Virus record (IMG/VR): IMGVR_UViG_3300046660_000219
Location: 62,001-126,000 of that record
Length of the DNA stretch: 64,000 nt
Strand: one strand, 5' to 3'
Part shown: positions 3,652 to 62,967 of the stretch, piece after piece
Layout: each line of letters starts with the position of its first letter
Numbering within the stretch: the first letter of the stretch is position 1
Translations under genes and position numbers: made by a program
The notes under the pieces: generated by a model
Told to the model about the DNA's origin: nothing
Databases searched by the model: none
The model's input: only the letters and a program-made list of their open reading frames with translations

Positions 3652-4731
3652 ATGATCCCCCAACTCCTGAATCCCAAGGCGAAGCACATCGCTGTCGCTA
3701 GCGTCGGTGGTTCGCGTCTGTTCAACGAACAAGGCGAACTGAACGCTACCACTAAGAAGGATGCGCTGATCCGCATTCTGGCCACGCTGGAACAACTCGG
3801 CGAAGGCAATATCACTACCGACGCGCAAGAAGAGTCGGCTACCCTTACGCCTGCTGAAAAGCGTGAAATCCTGACTGCTGCCTACCACGACGCCAGTGGT
3901 GAAGCGTGGCGCGAAATCGGCGCGCAAATCGCCGGCCGCCTGACGGAAACCAACAACCGTGAAGGCTTCGCCCGTCGTTTCATGATCAAGGGCGATCTGC
4001 AACAAGGCAACCGTCCGCGTTTCGAAGTTGACGTGAAAAACGTTACGGCCGTTAAGGCTGTCGGTACTGCGCAAGTGCACCCGATCTTCGTCCGTGACAA
4101 GTACATCGAAGTCGACGAAATCCAATTCGTCGCCAACCCGTACATCACGGAAAACGACCTGAACCAAGGTTCGGCTGACCAACTGGACAAGGCTTACCTT
4201 AACGCGCTGGAGCAAATCCAGCGCCAAGAGGATATCCTTTTCCGTTATCAACTGCTGGCCGCCGCCGGTGCGTTGAACGCTAACCCGCAACTATATATGA
4301 CGGGCGCGTTCTCTTCGGCCTATCTGACCGAAATGCACGAAACGCTAGGCTCGTGGGGTCTGACCGCCGCGTCGCTGCTGATGACGACCGACATCATCGG
4401 CGACATCATCGGCCAATCGGGCTTCACCGATTGGTTCGATCCGGTGTCCAAGTACGAGATGATCCAAACCGGCAAGATCGCTACCGTTCTTGGTATGGAT
4501 CTCGTCTCGGATGGCTATCGTCACAAGAAGATGCGCGTGCTTACGCGCGGTGAAGTCTTCGCGCTGGCGTCGCCGGAACAACTGGGCGGCTATACCGATC
4601 GTGGTCCGGTGCAATCGGCCCCGACCGGCCCGCAGCACACCCAAACCATCGGTAAGGGTTGGATCATGCACGAGTCGTACTCGTCGGTCCTGGCCAACGC
4701 CGCCGCCGTGGTTTCGGCTCGCAAGATCTAA
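3652..4731 (+). CDS. Major capsid protein
   Basis: 359 aa, strongest codon bias in window, position between head genes and neck/sheath, flanked by structured UTRs. Confidence 0.8.
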   Translation: MIPQLLNPKAKHIAVASVGGSRLFNEQGELNATTKKDALIRILATLEQLGEGNITTDAQEESATLTPAEKREILTAAYHDASGEAWREIGAQIAGRLTETNNREGFARRFMIKGDLQQGNRPRFEVDVKNVTAVKAVGTAQVHPIFVRDKYIEVDEIQFVANPYITENDLNQGSADQLDKAYLNALEQIQRQEDILFRYQLLAAAGALNANPQLYMTGAFSSAYLTEMHETLGSWGLTAASLLMTTDIIGDIIGQSGFTDWFDPVSKYEMIQTGKIATVLGMDLVSDGYRHKKMRVLTRGEVFALASPEQLGGYTDRGPVQSAPTGPQHTQTIGKGWIMHESYSSVLANAAAVVSARKI

Positions 4732-43600: not shown

Positions 43601-44020
43601 TTACGGCAAATACGGGTTGCGAATACCCCGAATGTTGTGATCGAACCAGTGACGCGCACGTGTCCCCACGCGCACAAAAGCGTAGCCGATAGTCGGTAGG
43701 ATTTGCTTCCATTTGATACGGAGCTTACGGCGCATCGTAGTGACATCCGTAACCATGCGCACTGGCCCGCCGTCGATCGACGCGGCGGTGACTGGGTAGG
43801 CGTAGTGGTTAGCAGACCACATGAACGCTAGAAACGCCTTGGCGCGCTCATCCGGCGAAAGGGTAGAGGCTTTATCACCCCACGTTCCGCCCGACATGTT
43901 GACCATGCCTTGTTCGATCCGCGTGCGTATCCAAACACGAAGCTCTTCGACATGCGGTCCTTCTGAGTCTACGGGAACGCCAAGACGCTCCATGTACGTG
44001 TTGACACGTTGTTCGGTCAT
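43601..44020 (-). CDS. Hypothetical protein
   Basis: SD aaaggta. Confidence 0.65.
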   Translation of the reverse strand: MTEQRVNTYMERLGVPVDSEGPHVEELRVWIRTRIEQGMVNMSGGTWGDKASTLSPDERAKAFLAFMWSANHYAYPVTAASIDGGPVRMVTDVTTMRRKLRIKWKQILPTIGYAFVRVGTRARHWFDHNIRGIRNPYLP

Positions 44021-44025
44021 TGTCG

Positions 44026-44484
44026 TTACCTTTGCTTAGCAGCTCTCTTGATGTGGTAAAGACCGCGCAGCTCCATCAAGAGCAAGCCTAGCACGTTATG
44101 ACCTTCACCAACAGGACATTGCCCCCAGAACTTGTCGCCCCAAGAATTGCCTTCGACGAGATAGGCGTCACCGGTCGCCATTAACTGTACATATAGCTTC
44201 GGGTGCGTGTCGAATTTACGACGCAGGATGCGCCGCATCATCTCTACCTTTACGTCCTCCCAATCTTCGCGTAACGTGACACGACGCCCCATGTGCTTAG
44301 CCGCACTGGGCGTATTAGCGTTCGCGATGGCTTCCCGTTCTTTCTGGCTACGCGTCTTCATCGCCTGAAAACTGTGTTCGGTAGTCGGGTACTCGATACC
44401 CGCGAACATATGTGGCGCGTCGTAGAAGTTACTTAGGAAATAGTAGTTTCCTTCGAAGAACTCGATGCGGGTAGGTGTTGGCAT
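44026..44484 (-). CDS. NADAR (YbiA-like) family protein
   Basis: FLSNFY, TEHSFQAMK, RRKF, LVEGNSWGDKFWG, GHNVLGLLLMELR. Confidence 0.92.
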   Translation of the reverse strand: MPTPTRIEFFEGNYYFLSNFYDAPHMFAGIEYPTTEHSFQAMKTRSQKEREAIANANTPSAAKHMGRRVTLREDWEDVKVEMMRRILRRKFDTHPKLYVQLMATGDAYLVEGNSWGDKFWGQCPVGEGHNVLGLLLMELRGLYHIKRAAKQR

Positions 44485-44511
44485 TGTTTAAGACTTTCTG
44501 AAGGGATCGGC

Positions 44512-44554
44512 TTCTACGAAGCCCGTACATTTTACATACGGGCTTGCTAGAAAA
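44512..44554. terminator. Probable terminator hairpin
   Basis: aagcccgta/tacgggctt stem with flanking extension. Confidence 0.6.
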
Positions 44555-44559
44555 CGATA

Positions 44560-44838
44560 TTAGCTAGGCTTAATTGGGTGCGTATCTCGCAAACCCTGCC
44601 AGTATTCTCGGACTTGCTTCTTGTACTCTTTAATAGTGTTGCTCTTCGCCTCATTAGTTTTTGCCTCGTTCAGTTTGCGTTTTCGTTCTTCTTCGCGATC
44701 TTGCCAAGCATAAGTATGACATCGCCCCTTATGTTTGGCCGTCTTACGCAGAAATGATTGTTTAGCCAGACGTTCACGACCATCTGTATCACGATGTCGG
44801 CGTAAGGGTAGTGGTTGTAATGATTTCCAATCGATCAT
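44560..44838 (-). CDS. Small basic hypothetical protein
   Basis: TAATG overlap. Confidence 0.6.
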   Translation of the reverse strand: MIDWKSLQPLPLRRHRDTDGRERLAKQSFLRKTAKHKGRCHTYAWQDREEERKRKLNEAKTNEAKSNTIKEYKKQVREYWQGLRDTHPIKPS

Positions 44839-45047
44839 TATTTACCTTTCTTATGACGATTACGGAACGCCACGCGGAAAGCCTTCCGCAGATAGGCAGC
44901 CTCACCCTCCCAGTCTACGCCGTCTTTGCGCAGACGTTTTACAGCACGATGCACGCGCTCGGTGGGTAAGTCGAAATGCACAGCAACCGCACTGATCAGG
45001 CGGCGGGGTTCTGCGATCCTGTGCGGTAGCAGTTGATAGGTGATCAT
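44838..45047 (-). CDS. Small basic protein, HTH-like
   Basis: Start MITYQ (ORF-track start 45188 runs through tRNA-Leu). Confidence 0.5.
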   Translation of the reverse strand: MITYQLLPHRIAEPRRLISAVAVHFDLPTERVHRAVKRLRKDGVDWEGEAAYLRKAFRVAFRNRHKKGK

Positions 45048-45081
45048 ACCTTTATCCCAATTTGGTGTGTGCTTAACGCAC

Positions 45082-45113
45082 GAGAGCCGAAGATCGTGGG
45101 ATCTTCGGCTCTC
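45082..45113. other. Perfect 14-bp hairpin just 3' of tRNA-Leu(TAG)
   Basis: gagagccgaagatc-gtgg-gatcttcggctctc; no U-tract. Confidence 0.7.
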
Positions 45114-45118
45114 TAGTG

Positions 45119-45202
45119 TGGTGCGGATGAGAGGACTCGAACCTCCACGTCTCTCAACATTGGTACCTAAAACCAACGCGTCTACCATTTCGCCACATCC
45201 GC
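45119..45202 (-). tRNA. trnL: tRNA-Leu(TAG)
   Basis: Cloverleaf gcggatg...catccgc-a-cca, anticodon arm ttggt-tttaggt-accaa, long variable arm. Confidence 0.92.
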
Positions 45203-45205
45203 TAG

Positions 45206-45274
45206 GATAGATACAGCCGGAAACTGAATAGCCCCACTCACCAGACGCTAGGCGACTAGCTAGCTGTACCTATC
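45206..45274 (-). ncRNA. Candidate small structured RNA between tRNAs
   Basis: 12-bp closing stem gataggtacagc/gctgtatctatc; internal gctag-tcgc-ctagc hairpin. Confidence 0.45.
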
Positions 45275-45282
45275 TTAGAGGA

Positions 45283-45315
45283 TGGTAGACCCTACTGGAC
45301 TCGAACCAGTAACCG
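45283..45315 (-). pseudogene. 3' fragment of disrupted tRNA(CAT)
   Basis: cggtt-actgg-ttcgagt-ccagt-agggtct-a-cca: variable region, T arm, acceptor 3' strand and CCA only. Confidence 0.85.
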
Positions 45316-45330
45316 GTGCAAGTCCCTCTC

Positions 45331-45894
45331 TCATCGTAATGCTTTTGGATCGAGACCATAATTACGTGCCCATTTGCGAACAGCGTTGTCACTAACTTTG
45401 TATTTACGTCCCAGTGCTGACCACGACGTAGTTCGTAGCAATCTAACCAATTCGCGCTTACTAGGACGACTAGCGCGGCGGGTGGCAAACTTGCAGCAAG
45501 CAGTAGAACAATAGTAGTCTTGCGTGATAAACAACGGGAAGTCACAGATCGCGCAGCGACGAATAGTAATCAACTTGGTTGATGAACGCTGATTACATTC
45601 AGAATTTATCAGCCGCTTGCCGCGCAAAGGTGCACCGCGATCCAACCACGCATGAATTTGCTTATGTGTAGATACACTGCACACCAGTAGGTTTTCAGGT
45701 GCGTTGTTAGCGCGTCTAAGGTCCAAATGATGCACTTCTTCTGAACGTCGCAGAGGACGTTCAATTTTACGTTCAGCTACTAACAAGTGCTCATAGACCC
45801 AACCTTTATAACCACCTTGTAGCGCGCGTGGATGGTCAGGCATAAAAACAAGTATGTAGCCCAGTTCTATTTGCTTGCGCTTAAGTTTCTTCAT
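45331..45894 (-). CDS. HNH homing endonuclease with Zn-finger and C-terminal HTH
   Basis: YEHLLVAE...EVHHLD...NNAPENL...H; CAIC...CSTAC; LGRKYKVSDNAVRKW. Confidence 0.92.
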   Translation of the reverse strand: MKKLKRKQIELGYILVFMPDHPRALQGGYKGWVYEHLLVAERKIERPLRRSEEVHHLDLRRANNAPENLLVCSVSTHKQIHAWLDRGAPLRGKRLINSECNQRSSTKLITIRRCAICDFPLFITQDYYCSTACCKFATRRASRPSKRELVRLLRTTSWSALGRKYKVSDNAVRKWARNYGLDPKALR

Positions 45895-45936
45895 AACTCG
45901 AACCTCCGTTGCTAAATAAATTAGCAGGTTCGAGTT
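45895..45936 (-). promoter_or_regulatory. RBS-sequestering hairpin containing CTAATTTAT
   Basis: aactcgaacct / aggttcgagtt stem ends at ATG and covers SD ggaggt; motif lies within the loop. Confidence 0.8.
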
Positions 45937-45939
45937 TGC

Positions 45940-46018
45940 TGGTACACCGGGTGGGATTCGAACCCACGAAATAAGTCCGTTATGAGCGGACGGCCTTAAA
46001 CCACTTGGCGACCGGTGC
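45940..46018 (-). tRNA. tRNA with CAT anticodon (probably Ile2; Met not excluded)
   Basis: gcaccgg/ccggtgt-a-cca; gtccg-ctcataa-cggac; gtggg-ttcgaat-cccac. Confidence 0.9.
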
Positions 46019-46034
46019 CTTTAGCAAGAGCTTA

Positions 46035-46075
46035 GTTATAGGAGCGATCGGCTCTAACCATTGAGCTAAGGGTCC
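46035..46075 (-). pseudogene. 5' fragment of disrupted tRNA(CAT)
   Basis: ggaccct-ta-gctc-aatggtta-gagc-c-gatcg-ctc[ct]ataac; ggaccct pairs with agggtct of the 3' fragment. Confidence 0.85.
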
Positions 46076-46099
46076 GCCTAGAGTTTGGATTTAGTTAGT

Positions 46100-46190
46100 T
46101 GGTACCGGGGAAGGGACTCGAACCCTCAAGGCCATTACTAGCCCAACGGTTTTTAAGACCGTCGCGTATCACCATTTCCGCCACCCCGGC
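46100..46190 (-). tRNA. trnL: tRNA-Leu(TAA)
   Basis: gccgggg/ccccggt-a-cca; acggt-cttaaaa-accgt; long variable arm. Confidence 0.92.
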
Positions 46191-46204
46191 ACATTACTAA
46201 CACA

Positions 46205-46406
46205 CCCCAAAGCTTCCGAAAGATACACAAAACGTCCAGCCGGTGCAGCGACTCTCGCCCTTTTAATCGGGCTCTCAGAATCATCTACACCTTAAGATCA
46301 TTCCATCTAAAACTGTACGCACACCTTTCAACTCACTTATTTAGCGCGAGTGTTAATAGGTGTCAGGCCGCGTATCCTGTTTGTGTACCTGTCGCAAACT
46401 TTGGCC
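46205..46406 (-). ncRNA. Candidate ~200-nt structured ncRNA
   Basis: 5'/3' end pairing ccaaagttt/aagctttgg and aggtacacaaa/tttgtgtatct, plus internal stems. Confidence 0.55.
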
Positions 46407-46422
46407 TTTAAAGTAGGTGGCG

Positions 46423-46496
46423 CGAACCCTGTTGGATTTGAACCAACAACCCCGCACTTAGAAGGCGCGTGCTCTATCCTGGTGAGCTAAGGGTTC
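46423..46496 (-). tRNA. trnR: tRNA-Arg(TCT)
   Basis: gaaccct/agggttc; cgcgc-cttctaa-gtgcg; followed by cgcca rather than cca. Confidence 0.9.
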
Positions 46497-46503
46497 TCAC
46501 CTT

Positions 46504-46680
46504 GTATGTGCGAGCCGCCGAACACTCTGGGCGGTGGGGTGCTTTGAGTGTTCGGCTAGCTCTAACCGCCTTACATAAACACAGGCAGGCGGCTTTTCGG
46601 AGGCAATGCCTCTCATCAAAACGGCGTTTAGGCGGGTGCTCATACCGTTTCGAAGATCACCCGGTATTCGCCGTGAGCTT
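46504..46680. ncRNA. Candidate pseudoknotted RNA(s) between terminase and tRNA cluster
   Basis: 11-bp stem gccgaacactc/gagtgttcggc with loop ggcggt complementary to accgcc; further stems acggcg/cgccgt and ataccg/cggtat. Confidence 0.5.
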
Positions 46681-46753
46681 GCAACACGACTACTGAGCGG
46701 GTGAGCCCGTAGAATAAGCACCATAGACAAACAAGTCAAGATCCCTGTCTAGA

Positions 46754-49174
46754 CTAGGCCGCCGCACGACGAACCATGCCTAGAGACCCGCCGCCCTGGC
46801 TGGACGAGGAAGAGCCACCAGTGCCGTATGAGCGCTTCGCACCCATGGCATTACTGACTACGCCAGTGCTACCTTCGCGCCCTCTAGCGACTACACCTAG
46901 GATAGCTCTACGTGTTCCTTGTGAGTACGTCGCGAAGTGTTCGGCAAGTTCCGGGTCCGTAGTGATGTGCCAACCAAGAACGATAGCGCGGAACAAATCA
47001 TCAGTTGCGCCTTCTGGCTTGCTTACCGTTACGCCGGGCAAGTCCTGCACACCGACAAGCTGATAAAGCAAGTGCGCAATCGGCTTGCCAGCAAAAGGTA
47101 TAGGATAGCCCGGTTGTCGCGCCAGTCGCATCGCTTCTTTGGGCTTCACCTCAAGCGCGGGTAGGCGCATGAAGTTGTCGTAGATCGCTGACTGTCGAAA
47201 TTGTTCAAACTCCGGATATTTCAACGAATGGGTAAGAGGTGTGATACCTTCCTCTTCTTCCATTTGTTGTAATAGTTGGATCGATTGCCAACGGTCGGCG
47301 CACAACACAGAGGCGCTGTAGTGTTGGATTAGTGGCTGTACGACGTTGCGGATAATCGACGGGAAGTGGGCCGGAGCATCTTTCGACAAGATCAACTCGG
47401 CGGCGAACCGCACACGCGCTTTGTTACCTTTTTCACCACACTTCTCGACGACAGCCACCGCGAAGCTGTTGTTCACAGAGCCCGCGTCGATGAACACACC
47501 ACAGGGTCCACCGTTGTACTCGCGATGGAACTTTACCTTTCCGGTGGTTTGTAACCCGCCCGATTTGTTTTTGAACACGCGGGTTTCTAGTGTCGCGTCG
47601 TTACCGGTTTTGCCATGGAAAGTGTTCTTGAGCGCTGACAGCATCAGGAATGGCGAACCAGACACCGGCGGAATGGCTGCGTAGTCGCGTGCAGCGGTAA
47701 CTGGGTTCTTGCGGTAGGCTTCGACGATGATCGGGCTGTCTCGCGAAATAGTAGGATTGATCTCCCACGTAGCCGCACGGTAACCGTACATGGTCTTGGA
47801 GCCACGCGATTGCTCGTGCAGCTTCATGATCATATCTTTTTGCGACGCCGGGCTCGAAATATTGTAGAAGTAGCCCATTGGGATGTTATTGTTCCCGGCG
47901 ATCAAGGCCTTGTACGCCGCGTCACGTACCGTGGTTAGTGAGCGCTCTAGCGAGATGTACACTTCTTCCGCATCCATGCGGTCGTAAGCCTTACCGCCTT
48001 TGGTTAGGCCCATGTTCATGTGGCCGATTTCGTCCACCGCCGCCGAGACACGCGTACGACCACGTGACGTCTTCTTGTTAGGTCCGCTAGGTGTGTACAG
48101 AAGGTTGCGGTGACGGTACCGCAAATAGGTATCTTTGAGATTGTACAGCTCGACGCCAATTCGTCTACCGGTCTGGTCCAACATCGCGTGGTACTGTTGA
48201 AACCACGGGAAGTCATTCAGCATATTGGTAAGCGGGTCCCAGAGGTTTTCTTTGGCCTGGGCGAACGTTAGAGCGACAAAGGTAGCTTGTAGTTGTTGTG
48301 ACCCGGCGATGTTAAACATCGCTTGCGGGTTCTGCGACTTGAGCAGGCGGTGCAAGTCGTATGTGACTTGCAGCATGACTTGGAAGGTCTTCGACGCCCG
48401 CTGGCCCGCCAGACCAGCCAGTTCATTGTATGGATTGAACGTCTCTTCCGCGACTAGTTCTGACTTCGTCGTGTGACAACGCGGGCAGACGCCAAACTCC
48501 AAAAAGGTAACGCGATCTTGAAAGTCTTCAATGCTTGCGTCAACCGGAACATTGGCCCACCATTTGCGATCGGTGCACTTTGGGTTAGGGCACCATTCGT
48601 TGAACAGTCGCGTCGGGTGTTCGATCTGCTTAGCCCACGGCGTGAATGACGGCGTGCGCGCGAACGCCGTATCAGTCACCCACGTGAAATAGTTAGGCGC
48701 AGTAGGAATGTCGCGATCGTCAATGCGCGAGTCTTGCGCAACGACACCTGACGATTGCAGCACTTGCTCGATCATTCGCTCAAGCGCACGCTCCTTGGAG
48801 CGTGCCTGTCCCGGTGTCCACTCCATACCCTTTCGCATGAGCATATCAGTGGCGACAGGTTTAGTGCGGGGCGGTACGTCGTGCCCGAAGCTTTCAACCT
48901 CCGTAACAGTAAGCAATCGCTTGGAGTAACTGGTGCACAGATAGTTGTAGTTCTTGGCCGGATCTAGACACTGCGAGAACTTACTACAGCCCATGCACGA
49001 GTTGTGTTTACTGGCAACCAGTCTTTGGCCTAGCTTACCTTTTTCTACCTTAGATTGTACCTCGGGCTCGTGTTTCGGCGCGGGGCGCACAGGCCGCACA
49101 GGCTTAGTCATTTTTGGCGCAGGCTTACTAGACTTGAGCGTCGGGCGTTTCTTTACAGAGAACAGCGAAGCCAT
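46754..49174 (-). CDS. terL: Terminase large subunit
   Basis: AGQRASKT Walker A, AAVDEIGH Walker B, ISSP, nuclease FIDAG...ADRWQ...TDDL. Confidence 0.9.
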   Translation of the reverse strand: MASLFSVKKRPTLKSSKPAPKMTKPVRPVRPAPKHEPEVQSKVEKGKLGQRLVASKHNSCMGCSKFSQCLDPAKNYNYLCTSYSKRLLTVTEVESFGHDVPPRTKPVATDMLMRKGMEWTPGQARSKERALERMIEQVLQSSGVVAQDSRIDDRDIPTAPNYFTWVTDTAFARTPSFTPWAKQIEHPTRLFNEWCPNPKCTDRKWWANVPVDASIEDFQDRVTFLEFGVCPRCHTTKSELVAEETFNPYNELAGLAGQRASKTFQVMLQVTYDLHRLLKSQNPQAMFNIAGSQQLQATFVALTFAQAKENLWDPLTNMLNDFPWFQQYHAMLDQTGRRIGVELYNLKDTYLRYRHRNLLYTPSGPNKKTSRGRTRVSAAVDEIGHMNMGLTKGGKAYDRMDAEEVYISLERSLTTVRDAAYKALIAGNNNIPMGYFYNISSPASQKDMIMKLHEQSRGSKTMYGYRAATWEINPTISRDSPIIVEAYRKNPVTAARDYAAIPPVSGSPFLMLSALKNTFHGKTGNDATLETRVFKNKSGGLQTTGKVKFHREYNGGPCGVFIDAGSVNNSFAVAVVEKCGEKGNKARVRFAAELILSKDAPAHFPSIIRNVVQPLIQHYSASVLCADRWQSIQLLQQMEEEEGITPLTHSLKYPEFEQFRQSAIYDNFMRLPALEVKPKEAMRLARQPGYPIPFAGKPIAHLLYQLVGVQDLPGVTVSKPEGATDDLFRAIVLGWHITTDPELAEHFATYSQGTRRAILGVVARGREGSTGVVSNAMGAKRSYGTGGSSSSSQGGGSLGMVRRAAA

Positions 49175-61416: not shown

Positions 61417-62967
61417 TTATTCGTCGGATAGATCGTCTGAAGTCTGCCCAACCTTCTTTTGGCGAGCAGCAGCCATCAGTTCTATCGTTTCTCGACGTTG
61501 TAGTTGCGAGAAGGCTTCCGCGCGCATACGAGGAATACGATCGAAACCATTTTCCTTGAGCGCTTTGGCGTACTTACCGCCAAATTTCTCAGCCAGCACG
61601 AAGGTTTTGAACTGCATCCACGTCATCAGTTCAAGGTGCTTGTGTTTAGGCAGCGTTACCTTAAATTTGAGGTGTCGCTTACCTTCAACTTGACCCGTAA
61701 CAACGAGGTAGCGCCACAGATCGAAGACTGGATCAATGCCACGGCCAAGACCGTCAGGATCGCCCGTCCAGATACGGCACCAATCTTTCAGAAACGGCTG
61801 ACCCGCCTTGTTCTTGACGTTGGTCAGGCCTTTGAAAGAATAGTAGTCATTACCACCGAGCGGATTAGGCTCGATGTTCAACGCACTACTTACCTTATCT
61901 TTCGCGAAGCTACCGGGAGCCCCGTCAACAGCACGTGTCCTAATCCATGTACGCTGCACAGATGATAGCTTGAGGACGTTGCCGCACGCTTCATATTCCG
62001 TGGGGCCGTGGGTGACACCCGGCTTGTCACGCAATGAATTAGCACTCACCAGCACCACGCCTTTACGACGGAAGCGACCGGCCACTAACGGTAGCATTTC
62101 TGCTAGCTTACGCGCCTTCTCCGACATACCTCCGCTGGAACCCAACTCACGCTCGTCAGCAGCGTCAGTGATCAACGCTGGCCACGAGTCCAAAGCCAAG
62201 CACAACTGCGGTTTGGTGTCTTCCGTCAAAAAGATAGCGTAGTCACGGTTAGACAACTTGGCGTCGGGCTTCACGCCACCTTTGCTCATGCCTTCAATTA
62301 GAGCTAGATGGTTCTTGTTACTCTTATCAAACCGGAGAACGAACGATTGAGCTACATCGTCCCAGATTTTGTCAGGCAACACCCGCATGGTGGCGCGCAG
62401 GAAGTTGAAATAGTTCTCCAGGATATTTTGGTCGTGGTAACGCAGACGCGACATGAGGGCGGCGTCGAAATCCTTCCCCATGGATTGCATCATTAGTTCG
62501 TGAGCAAGACTGTTCTCCGCGTCGTTGATACCGCTGCGGATGTTCTGCATGAGGGCTTCACCCAACGTGTGAGTGATAGTGGTCGTCTTGCCCGAACCTT
62601 CTGGCCCTACCATTTGGCAGATACCCAAAGGAACCCAACCGCCGCCGTGCAGGATGTCGATCATCAACGAGCCTGACGAGATACGGTCGAGAGTATGGAC
62701 GCCACCAACCATTTCGTACTTCTTGGCGGCGGTGTCGAATTCGAGATCCAACAAGTAGGCTAGATCATACTCGTTAGCGATGACAATAGAACTACCCTTG
62801 CCTGCCTTGGCGCTCACGTCATGCGCAACGACAGCGGGTAGATTACTACCCTTGTTAGCACGTCCGCGTGCGGTCTTGACCGGCGCAGCACGAGCCTTTG
62901 TAGGAGCCGGCTTGACCGGCTTAGCGGGTGCGGCCTTTTGGACCGCTTTGGTGGCTCTGCTAACCAT
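61417..62967 (-). CDS. recA: RecA/UvsX-like recombinase
   Basis: SSGSLMIDIL, GPEGSGKTT, ALDSW, ANSLRDKPG, CGNVLKL. Confidence 0.92.
   Translation of the reverse strand: MVSRATKAVQKAAPAKPVKPAPTKARAAPVKTARGRANKGSNLPAVVAHDVSAKAGKGSSIVIANEYDLAYLLDLEFDTAAKKYEMVGGVHTLDRISSGSLMIDILHGGGWVPLGICQMVGPEGSGKTTTITHTLGEALMQNIRSGINDAENSLAHELMMQSMGKDFDAALMSRLRYHDQNILENYFNFLRATMRVLPDKIWDDVAQSFVLRFDKSNKNHLALIEGMSKGGVKPDAKLSNRDYAIFLTEDTKPQLCLALDSWPALITDAADERELGSSGGMSEKARKLAEMLPLVAGRFRRKGVVLVSANSLRDKPGVTHGPTEYEACGNVLKLSSVQRTWIRTRAVDGAPGSFAKDKVSSALNIEPNPLGGNDYYSFKGLTNVKNKAGQPFLKDWCRIWTGDPDGLGRGIDPVFDLWRYLVVTGQVEGKRHLKFKVTLPKHKHLELMTWMQFKTFVLAEKFGGKYAKALKENGFDRIPRMRAEAFSQLQRRETIELMAAARQKKVGQTSDDLSDE

Follow-up and report, generated by a model that had tools for sequence, protein, structure and literature searches.

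Endonucleases in and among tRNA genes

Homing endonucleases normally avoid harming their host in one of three ways. They hide in self-splicing introns or inteins, sit between genes, or in rare cases split a protein that can reassemble. Four described systems bear on the locus presented here. SegB of phages T4 and T6 is a free-standing GIY-YIG homing endonuclease in the tRNA gene cluster (PMC2330249, PMC13096335). It recognizes the T-arm motif of tRNA genes and spreads itself with neighboring tRNA genes (PMC2330249), while in T6 a 718-bp tRNA(Tyr)-plus-segB unit, formed by microhomology, is amplified (PMC13096335). Group I introns occupy bacterial tRNA anticodon loops, as in the Azoarcus pre-tRNA-Ile(CAU), and an endonuclease-encoding intron is found in cyanobacterial tRNA-fMet genes (reviewed in PMC3984707). 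The Azoarcus intron sits directly after the CAU anticodon. In Aeromonas phage Aeh1, the intron-less HNH gene mobE is inserted inside nrdA and splits it into two pieces whose protein fragments reassemble into an active enzyme (PMC3045599). Finally, I-HmuI of Bacillus phage SPO1 (PDB 1u3e) is an HNH nicking endonuclease encoded in a DNA polymerase gene intron.

The window analyzed here is a stretch of 64,000 nucleotides, positions 62,001 to 126,000 of IMG/VR record IMGVR_UViG_3300046660_000219. An initial annotation, made from sequence alone, described a tRNA gene at 45283-46075 split by an HNH cassette that carries its own replacement tRNA. This observation is correct: every element is present on the minus strand, and a 719-bp insert separates the two ends of a CAT-anticodon tRNA gene. 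The accompanying interpretation, in which a selfish element destroys its target yet remains neutral by supplying a cleavage-resistant copy, is supported only in part.

A comparison with each system shows where the locus differs. Like SegB, the HNH gene lies among tRNA genes, here in a cluster with four intact ones, and is co-inherited with an adjacent tRNA gene, and its tRNA-plus-nuclease unit is of similar size. However, its product is an HNH rather than a GIY-YIG enzyme, it sits inside a tRNA gene rather than between intact ones, leaving two matching halves, and its cleavage and homing are inferred where those of SegB are demonstrated. The target is the same kind of gene, at the same region, as that of the tRNA group I introns, but the window has no detectable ribozyme core, its break is not at 36/37, part of the 3' exon is missing so that splicing cannot restore the tRNA, and the insert holds a whole tRNA gene. 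As with mobE, an intron-less HNH gene splits a phage gene in two, but the split product is an RNA that has lost part of its anticodon arm, and function, if kept at all, is supplied by a second gene within the insert.

Anatomy of the split tRNA(CAT) gene

The features of the locus and its flanks are as follows.

46100..46190 (minus): flanking tRNA-Leu(TAA) of the same cluster, 24 nt upstream of the 5' half
46035..46075 (minus): 5' half of the disrupted outer tRNA(CAT) gene, positions 1-39, from the acceptor 5' strand through C39
46040..46041 (minus): 2-nt CT insertion between C34 and A35 of the outer anticodon, a pseudogene lesion or a repair scar
46019..46034 (minus): left spacer, 16 nt
45940..46018 (minus): intact passenger tRNA(CAT), including CCA
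45895..45939 (minus): 5' UTR hairpin of the HNH gene
45331..45894 (minus): intact gene for a predicted HNH homing endonuclease of 187 aa
45316..45330 (minus): right spacer, 15 nt, between the HNH stop codon and the 3' half
45312..45319 (minus): 8-nt direct repeat GCACCGGT, whose second copy at 46011-46018 is the first 8 nt of the passenger tRNA
45283..45315 (minus): 3' half of the outer tRNA gene, from the probable variable loop through CCA
45119..45202 (minus): flanking tRNA-Leu(TAG) of the same cluster, downstream of the 3' half

The 5' half reads as acceptor strand GGACCCT followed by TA, a D arm of GCTC/AATGGTTA/GAGC, the anticodon-stem 5' strand GATCG, and the loop CTC[CT]ATAA followed by C39. 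The 3' half consists of CGGTT, a T arm of ACTGG/TTCGAGT/CCAGT, and the acceptor strand AGGGTCT followed by A and CCA. The two acceptor strands pair at 7 of 7 positions, one of them G1.U72, and the T stem pairs at 5 of 5. The initial annotation considered the 3' strand of the anticodon stem lost. This requires one correction, as CGGTT could be either the variable loop, which is preferred by analogy with relatives, or the anticodon-stem 3' strand, because it can pair with GATCG. Either way, about five bases of the gene are missing. A hidden anticodon-stem strand inside the end of the ORF was rejected, since the CGATC found 45 nt upstream of the T arm would require a 37-nt variable region.

The identity of the halves rests on exact 25-nt matches to six intact tRNA(CAT) genes. 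Bases 1-25 of the 5' half are identical to genes in two other viral contigs (L002 and L004; comparison loci carry an L number throughout), and bases 10-34 are identical to genes in four metagenome contigs (L096-L099). All four of the latter continue with ATAAC after CTC, and the intact relatives read CTCATAAC at this point, confirming the CT insertion proposed in the initial annotation. By contrast, a generic scan for a T arm, a pairing acceptor strand and a D arm is a weak test on its own: it finds only this pair and one ordinary tRNA in the window, but shuffled windows give 0.47 such candidates. This number, together with the origin of the window in a metagenome-assembled contig, is what favors a chance resemblance or an assembly chimera. 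Such an explanation is very unlikely given the exact identities, the position of the 5' half in a tRNA cluster on the same strand, and the recurrence of the architecture in independent assemblies from other samples (L008, L009 and L010 from three samples, plus L101, L011 and L105). ARAGORN, applied to the joined halves or with introns allowed, was uninformative, as it calls a tRNA for almost any junction and in L101 invents a weak anticodon stem from the end of the HNH coding sequence.

The passenger tRNA was identified by ARAGORN and by the Rfam tRNA model (53.3 bits). Its body is different from that of the outer gene and is unusual, with a 3-bp D stem, an 11-nt D loop, a 7-nt variable loop and a G1.U72 pair. 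The initial annotation considered the outer gene to be of Ile2 type. Both the outer gene and the passenger have C4:G69 and C5:G68 and neither has initiator features; the TilS identity pairs are 4:69 and 5:68 in E. coli but 3:70 and 4:69 in Burkholderia (PMC11947777), and because these rules differ between hosts, sequence alone does not separate Ile2 from elongator Met.

The hairpin preceding the HNH gene has an 11-bp outer stem, a perfect 11-nt inverted repeat, that encloses a small inner hairpin and buries the GGAGG ribosome-binding site in its 3' arm. Its fold energy is -20.1 kcal/mol (z = -4.6), which none of 200 shuffles equals. The HNH assignment is supported by a PHROG HNH endonuclease hit at 4e-24 and by residues H55, H56, N64, N68, H77 and H81, which are invariant across 21 family members including the window's protein; all invariant family residues are present. 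Pfam HNH_3 scores 19.8 bits, below the curated 24.8-bit cut-off, although homologues carry precomputed PF13392. Four invariant cysteines (C114, C117, C129, C133) form a putative zinc motif and are accompanied by a conserved C-terminal motif. An AlphaFold2 model (pLDDT 87.9) shows three helices at 146-178, for which Foldseek matches to helix-turn-helix domains are weak. The best PDB match of the model is I-HmuI, with which it shares the modular plan of an N-terminal HNH domain and a predicted C-terminal helix-turn-helix, but this match is also weak (E = 0.16, 87 aligned columns, 25% identity), and a sequence search returned no hit to any solved structure.

Relatives with and without a ribozyme

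The enzyme belongs to a family of more than 1000 proteins tied to phage tRNA genes; of 65 distinct ORFs examined, 42 have an intact tRNA within 100 nt. As the initial annotation proposed, the locus has no group I core: Rfam finds no Intron_gpI at E<=1 in 44000-47500. None was found at E<=1 in L008, L011, L012, L100, L101, L102, L105 or L107, or at the gathering threshold in L017. The initial annotation missed, however, that the nearest relatives outside this enzyme's clade are encoded in classical group I introns in the same kind of tRNA(CAT) gene. The same model scores 55.8-83.6 bits in L019, L020, L028, L030, L034, L037, L038, L039 and L044, and 61.9 bits in L013-L015. In these loci the intron is placed directly after CAU, the 5' exon ends in CTCAT, and an intact 3' exon follows. 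A 2014 review stated that every phage group I intron known at that time lies in a protein-coding gene, even though phages carry many tRNA genes; the loci found here show many phage tRNA(CAT) genes with endonuclease-bearing group I introns.

In an unrooted tree, ten ribozyme-less enzymes, including that of the window, form one clade (ultrafast bootstrap 96, SH-aLRT 94). Each lies in or beside tRNA-gene pieces, and most are accompanied by a passenger tRNA. All eleven loci labeled intron-borne lie on the other side of that branch; ten have an Rfam hit, while L025 is labeled from its split-tRNA anatomy only. The sub-clades match cassette architecture. The element is therefore best seen as the ribozyme-less counterpart of a tRNA-intron homing endonuclease, although the tree does not say whether this form descends from an intron-borne ancestor or is the free-standing precursor that later invaded an intron. 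Together, the two clades offer a natural system for studying how a mobile intron gains or loses its ribozyme.

The tRNA-hairpin-HNH unit is a conserved block. It recurs in L008 and L101, whose HNH proteins are 63% and 60% identical, with the passenger homologue directly upstream of the HNH gene. The passenger keeps all 20 base pairs in the three copies, 9 of them through compensatory changes, indicating selection, although its body is odd and its Rfam scores in relatives are low (30.6 and 37.3 bits). In L101 the unit again lies inside a different, split tRNA(CAT) gene, whose anticodon loop, CTCATAA, is intact and whose 7/7 acceptor pairs are kept through compensatory differences from the window, which argues, though only indirectly, for spread into live genes. 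Acceptor strands of the outer halves also pair 7/7 in L011, L012, L032, L017, L102 and L105, and 6/7 in L107. An equivalent GAACC...GGTTCG hairpin is present in most clade members.

These relatives suggest a second possibility, that a group I intron decayed in place, leaving its exons as dead halves around an immobile cassette that captured the passenger later. In its favor, the 5' exon of L013 is 96% identical to the window's 5' half over 26 nt, and the GAACC...GGTTC hairpin before the ORF resembles the conserved hairpin at the 5' end of the introns. This is nonetheless improbable. The ribozyme-less clade occupies clearly different tRNA genes, CAT types with different bodies and a Lys(TTT) type, and therefore moved after losing, or without ever having, a ribozyme. 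In addition, the outer stems are intact and differ between loci by compensatory changes, which is unexpected for long-dead exons.

An inferred homing cassette and its alternatives

The explanation held with moderate confidence is that a phage tRNA(CAT) gene was inactivated by a mobile cassette holding a passenger tRNA(CAT), a putative translation-control hairpin, and an I-HmuI-like HNH homing endonuclease. The analysis itself establishes that the halves are the two ends of one tRNA(CAT) gene which, lacking about five bases and having two extra in the anticodon, cannot make a decoding tRNA; that no ribozyme is detectable and the endonuclease gene is intact; that the enzyme falls in the ribozyme-less, tRNA-associated clade; and that passenger, hairpin and HNH gene are inherited as one unit. 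The rest is inference. The enzyme would cut or nick uninterrupted tRNA genes near the anticodon stem and variable loop, and repair would copy the cassette from an occupied genome during co-infection, using the D-arm and T-arm sides of the tRNA gene as homology arms. Without a ribozyme, the target tRNA would be destroyed rather than merely interrupted. In this sub-clade the linked tRNA(CAT), which differs in exactly the anticodon-stem and variable-loop region, probably restores the lost decoding capacity and is spared by the enzyme. The claims of the initial annotation that the enzyme cuts the uninterrupted gene but spares the passenger, that the passenger is isofunctional, that the insertion is neutral, and that swapping tRNA bodies could evade host anticodon nucleases all remain at this inferred level.

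If correct, this would be a fourth way for a homing endonuclease to avoid harming its host, applied to an RNA gene: destroy the target and carry a spare. It would also link the literature on intron-borne and free-standing endonucleases with recent evidence that nuclease-plus-tRNA segments help phages escape tRNA-cleaving defenses. A broader reading is possible but tentative, in which a lineage of ribozyme-less HNH elements lives inside phage tRNA genes, each destroying the resident gene and bringing a cleavage-resistant replacement with a different body. Such elements would be tRNA-swapping cassettes that spread between co-infecting phages and, as a side effect, change the sequence that host tRNA-targeting defenses must recognize.

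Compensation is not general, however. L011 and L105 split a Lys(TTT)-type tRNA and carry no intact passenger, and in four other relatives the passenger has a Thr(TGT) anticodon, with body similarity too noisy to decide whether the outer genes are themselves Thr tRNAs. A related phage with the uninterrupted gene, sought as the initial annotation had proposed, was not found. A megablast of the tRNA region against 50,697 phage records returned nothing, and an exact search for the 3' half in viral contigs returned only the window's own contig, as did an IMG/VR search with the large terminase. Protein relatives of the terminase at 47-62% identity (L005-L007) do not keep the tRNA cluster. The gene order Arg(TCT)-Leu(TAA)-tRNA(CAT) also occurs in L037 and L040, but without sequence similarity, and was not taken as evidence of orthology.

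Some loci instead suggest that the halves are recombination debris. In this view, a free-standing HNH gene makes breaks in a tRNA cluster, and repair between the conserved D and T boxes of different tRNA genes, or collapse of a tandem tRNA-plus-HNH amplification, leaves partial and chimeric copies around it, the passenger being simply the neighboring gene. L008 has two unmatched 5' halves, and its 3' half pairs not with these but with the passenger's own 5' strand, so later rearrangement or a different history is involved. L105 has a chimeric tRNA made of a Lys 5' half and a foreign 3' half, and L017 has a decayed T arm. The 8-nt repeat in the window brackets a 699-bp tRNA-plus-HNH unit that resembles the 718-bp unit of T6. 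However, five 8-nt repeats occur in these 861 nt, so the repeat is at chance level, does not stand as a target-site duplication, and is suggestive only in its position. Furthermore, the outer acceptor strands pair in nine loci despite very different sequences, and the right junction sits at the start of the variable loop in the window, L008, L011, L032, L101 and L105, a regularity that fits a site-specific, inherited insertion better than random debris. The debris explanation is thus doubtful, but the right junction does complicate the insertion model. The block from the HNH 3' end through the 3' half aligns with L008 at 70% over 120 nt, and the spacer motif GACTTG resembles GTCTTG at the same junction in L008 and L101. 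Part of the target therefore travels with the cassette, blurring the line between insertion and co-conversion.

A last alternative, that the halves are functional, is very doubtful. They would pair in the transcript as a tRNA-like clamp that directs RNase P and 3' processing and stabilizes the HNH mRNA, or be rejoined into a working tRNA by an RNA ligase. Against this stand lesions expected of pseudogenes: the anticodon insertion and missing bases in the window, a T-stem mismatch in L100, the decayed T arm of L017, the 6/7 acceptor of L107 and the unmatched halves of L008. Simple ligation cannot restore the window's gene, and processing of the passenger would cut the 5' half away from the mRNA. 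There is also no leader-trailer helix of the archaeal split-tRNA type, as the two spacers are no more complementary than chance (-8.4 kcal/mol, with 137 of 500 shuffles doing as well). On the other hand, the halves fold together in trans into acceptor, D and T arms at -23.6 kcal/mol, and stems are kept in most loci. In L032 and L105 the HNH stop codon overlaps the variable loop, and in L011 it lies directly before it, so that the ORF abuts the T arm directly.

Anatomy of the split tRNA gene

The window is part of a 205,908-bp viral contig. A large terminase gene lies at 46754-49174, and a cluster of four intact tRNA genes follows on the minus strand:

46422-46496 (minus): tRNA-Arg(TCT)
46100-46190 (minus): tRNA-Leu(TAA)
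45940-46018 (minus): a tRNA with a CAT anticodon
45119-45202 (minus): tRNA-Leu(TAG)

Just downstream of the cluster, 44026-44484 on the minus strand encodes a NADAR-domain protein (Pfam 2.6e-27). This family has been linked to reversal of ADP-ribosylation, so the gene may have an anti-defence role.

The CAT-anticodon tRNA lies inside the remains of another tRNA gene. Read on the minus strand, 46075-46035 is the 5' part of a tRNA, with the acceptor strand GGACCCT, TA, a perfect D arm, the anticodon-stem strand GATCG, the loop CTC[CT]ATAA, and C39. The 3' part, 45315-45283, consists of CGGTT, a perfect T arm (ACTGG/TTCGAGT/CCAGT), the acceptor strand AGGGTCT, A and CCA. The two acceptor strands pair at all seven positions. 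The 719 bp between the halves hold, in order, a 16-nt spacer, the intact tRNA(CAT), a 45-nt leader, a 187-codon ORF at 45331-45894, and a 15-nt spacer. The initial annotation, which placed a tRNA gene split by an HNH cassette carrying its own tRNA here, is correct in its coordinates and description, and its observation is confirmed.

A generic scan for a T arm, a pairing acceptor strand and a D arm finds only this pair of halves and one normal tRNA in the window, but shuffled windows give 0.47 such candidates, so this test alone is weak. The decisive evidence is sequence identity. Bases 1-25 of the 5' half are identical to an intact tRNA(CAT) gene in two viral contigs, and bases 10-34 are identical to four intact tRNA(CAT) genes in metagenome contigs. 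All of these continue CTC-ATAAC, followed by the stem 3' strand, TGGTT and the T arm. The 5' half therefore runs to position 39 and carries a 2-nt CT insertion in the anticodon, while about five bases are missing between the halves. CGGTT is most simply the variable loop, by analogy with relatives, although it can also pair with GATCG, in which case the missing piece could be the variable loop instead. Either way, the outer gene cannot yield a decoding tRNA. An assembly artefact is contradicted by independent assemblies with the same layout.

G1.U72 wobble pairs close the acceptor stems of the outer gene (46075/45287), of all three copies of the enclosed, or passenger, tRNA(CAT) (46018/45943 in the window), and of several intact tRNAs in unrelated phage contigs, such as the tRNA genes of metagenome contig L096.

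The HNH gene and its intron-borne relatives

The ORF encodes an HNH endonuclease. It matches the PHROG HNH endonuclease family at 4e-24, whereas its Pfam HNH_3 score of 19.8 bits falls below the 24.8-bit cut-off. All invariant family residues are present, including the His and Asn residues, four cysteines and a C-terminal motif. An AlphaFold2 model has a mean pLDDT of 87.9, and its best PDB match, a weak one, is the intron-encoded HNH enzyme I-HmuI, with probability 0.94 and E = 0.16. The leader is predicted to fold into a strong hairpin that buries the GGAGG ribosome-binding site, with an energy of -20.1 kcal/mol and z = -4.6. Control of this kind is common for phage homing endonuclease genes. 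The 3' arm of the hairpin repeats the T-loop sequence GGTTCGAGT of the 3' half (45299-45307, 45896-45904 and 45927-45935), and a GGTTCGA motif sits just before the start codon in most members of the enzyme's clade. It could be a T-arm relic or a self-recognition site.

An Rfam search at E<=1 finds no group I intron in 44000-47500, in contrast to many relatives of the enzyme. The protein family is large, with 1052 proteins at E<=1e-20, and it is tied to tRNA genes, since 42 of 65 distinct ORFs in viral contigs have an intact tRNA within 100 nt. In many loci the ORF lies inside a tRNA(CAT) gene whose 5' part ends in CTCAT, and about 700-775 nt later come AA, the stem 3' strand and the rest of the tRNA. 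Rfam scores these inserts as group I introns, at 55.8-83.6 bits in loci L019, L020, L028, L030, L034, L037, L038, L039 and L044, and at 61.9 bits in L013-L015. The 5' exon of L013 is 96% identical to the window's 5' half over 26 nt.

Such tRNA(CAT) genes, interrupted directly after the CAU anticodon by group I introns that encode this HNH family, are carried by many large phage contigs (L013-L015, L019-L021, L025-L031, L034-L040 and L044; for example L039 1361-2207 and L013 3953-4724). A 2014 review states that all phage group I introns known at that time lie in protein-coding genes, despite the many phage tRNA genes (PMC3984707), and literature searches found no later report of phage tRNA introns. 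In four of these contigs (L039 1280-2283; L034, L035 and L036 1277-2284) one tRNA gene is nested inside another. An outer tRNA(CAT) is broken after C34 and encloses a complete intron-containing tRNA(CAT), with a 28-nt inverted repeat (79-82% complementary) flanking the inner gene. In L039 the outer pieces are 35/35 and 37/37 identical to the inner exons, while in L034 the outer gene is a different tRNA.

A ribozyme-less clade inside tRNA genes

On a maximum-likelihood tree of 45 family members, the window's enzyme falls in a clade of ten with ultrafast bootstrap 96 and SH-aLRT 94. All eleven loci labelled intron-borne lie on the other side of that branch. Ten of the eleven have an Rfam hit, while L025, which did not reach the Rfam gathering score, is labelled from its split-tRNA anatomy only. 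None of the ten ribozyme-less loci has a group I hit, eight plus the window at E<=1 and L017 at the gathering threshold. All ten sit in or beside tRNA-gene pieces, although L100 shows only a 3' half, because the contig ends just upstream of the ORF, and the pieces in L008 do not match one another.

The sub-clades match the architecture of the loci. In the window, L008, L100 and L101, an unusual tRNA(CAT) is followed by a hairpin, the HNH gene and then a 3' half directly after the stop codon, with L100 cut off upstream. In L011 and L105 the outer gene is a Lys(TTT)-type tRNA and there is no intact passenger; in L105 the stop codon TAG overlaps the variable loop. In L012, L017, L102 and L107 the HNH gene is followed by an unusual long-armed tRNA-Thr(TGT) and then the outer 3' part. 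L032 has the same layout but a more distant enzyme.

The passenger tRNAs, named here by anticodon, have unusual bodies. Those of the window (45940-46018), L008 (1547-1622) and L101 (724-799) keep all 20 base pairs, 9 of them through compensatory changes, and share a 3-bp D stem, a 7-nt variable loop and G1.U72. The Thr(TGT) type, found at L012 4592-4677, L017 2071-2155, L102 2585-2671 and L107 2581-2667, is 85-87 nt long with a long variable arm, like a class II tRNA. The outer 3' part in L012 (about 4700-4710) has the loop CTCTAAA, which would be anticodon CTA, and ARAGORN calls a tRNA with anticodon TTA, which reads a stop codon, at 1101-1190 of L062, another contig of the set. Some of these phages may carry suppressor tRNAs.

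The passenger tRNAs and the outer genes are evidence that the cassette is a unit and has moved. In L101, whose HNH protein is 60% identical to the window's, the outer gene is a different tRNA(CAT). It has an intact CTCATAA loop, and its acceptor strands pair 7/7 but differ from the window's by compensatory changes at 3:70 and 7:66. Such changes, spanning 700 bp, are expected if two live genes were entered separately or if the distal ends come from the recipient during homing, but not for exons that died in a common ancestor. In-place decay of an intron is likewise contradicted by the different outer genes. Outer acceptor strands also pair 7/7 in L011, L012 and L032 and, as read directly from the sequences, in L017, L102 and L105, while they pair 6/7 in L107. 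The right junction is homologous between the window, L008 and L101, so the junction itself is inherited.

Decay is also visible, in the window's CT insertion, a T-stem mismatch in L100, a degenerate T arm in L017, unmatched halves in L008 and a chimeric tRNA in L105. This argues that the halves are pseudogene remnants and not functional RNA. A functional split tRNA or tRNA-like clamp is contradicted by these lesions and by the lack of a leader-trailer helix. The main rival explanation is nuclease-provoked recombination debris, or collapse of a tandem amplification as seen for SegB in phage T6 (PMC13096335), which may be part of the history. The 8-nt repeat GCACCGGT, at 45312-45319 and 46011-46018, brackets a 699-bp tRNA-plus-HNH unit that is reminiscent of the 718-bp tRNA(Tyr)-plus-segB amplification unit of T6, but the repeat that would support this rival is at chance frequency.

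Inferred homing and comparable elements

The best-supported reading is a homing endonuclease cassette that lives in tRNA genes without a ribozyme. While the anatomy of the locus, the missing ribozyme core and the supported clade rest on the sequences themselves, the three steps of the mechanism are inferred and none is shown. In this view, the enzyme breaks uninterrupted tRNA genes near the anticodon stem and variable loop. Repair from an occupied genome would then copy the cassette, with the two sides of the tRNA gene as homology arms. Finally, in the window's sub-clade the linked tRNA(CAT), which differs from the outer gene in exactly the anticodon-stem and variable-loop region, would replace the lost gene. 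The reading offered in the initial annotation, of a selfish element that destroys its target tRNA and supplies a substitute, is partly supported. Both the outer gene and the passenger have C4:G69 and C5:G68, which are TilS identity pairs in E. coli, but these rules differ between hosts (PMC11947777), so the pairs do not tell Ile2 from elongator Met. On the unrooted tree, ribozyme loss and intron invasion by a free-standing gene are both possible, the second route being an accepted pathway for forming mobile introns (PMC3984707).

On this reading the element works like a free-standing homing endonuclease of a phage tRNA cluster such as SegB (PMC2330249), and like the HNH gene mobE that splits nrdA in phage Aeh1 (PMC3045599), while its enzyme lineage is tied to Azoarcus-type tRNA(CAU) introns. 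It is not a group I intron, because it has neither a detectable core nor exons that join into a complete tRNA, and it is not a SegB homologue, because the catalytic family differs. Homing endonucleases of phage tRNA clusters and HNH genes that split a phage gene are thus already known; the window's element differs from SegB in its enzyme and from the introns of its relatives in lacking a ribozyme.

Selfish elements are common in this phage group. Several homologues of the large terminase at 46754-49174 (proteins P0008, P0010, P0034 and P0045) carry inteins with LAGLIDADG domains, and L006, a contig found through the terminase, has an intein in a helicase-like gene. In addition, tmRNA genes lie next to the tRNA clusters of several related phage loci (L008 1-427, L107 891-1346, L006 14703-15101, L033 2273-2668, L034 568-927 and L039 796-1138). 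Those in L008 and L107 are of the two-piece alphaproteobacterial type, which hints at alphaproteobacterial hosts.
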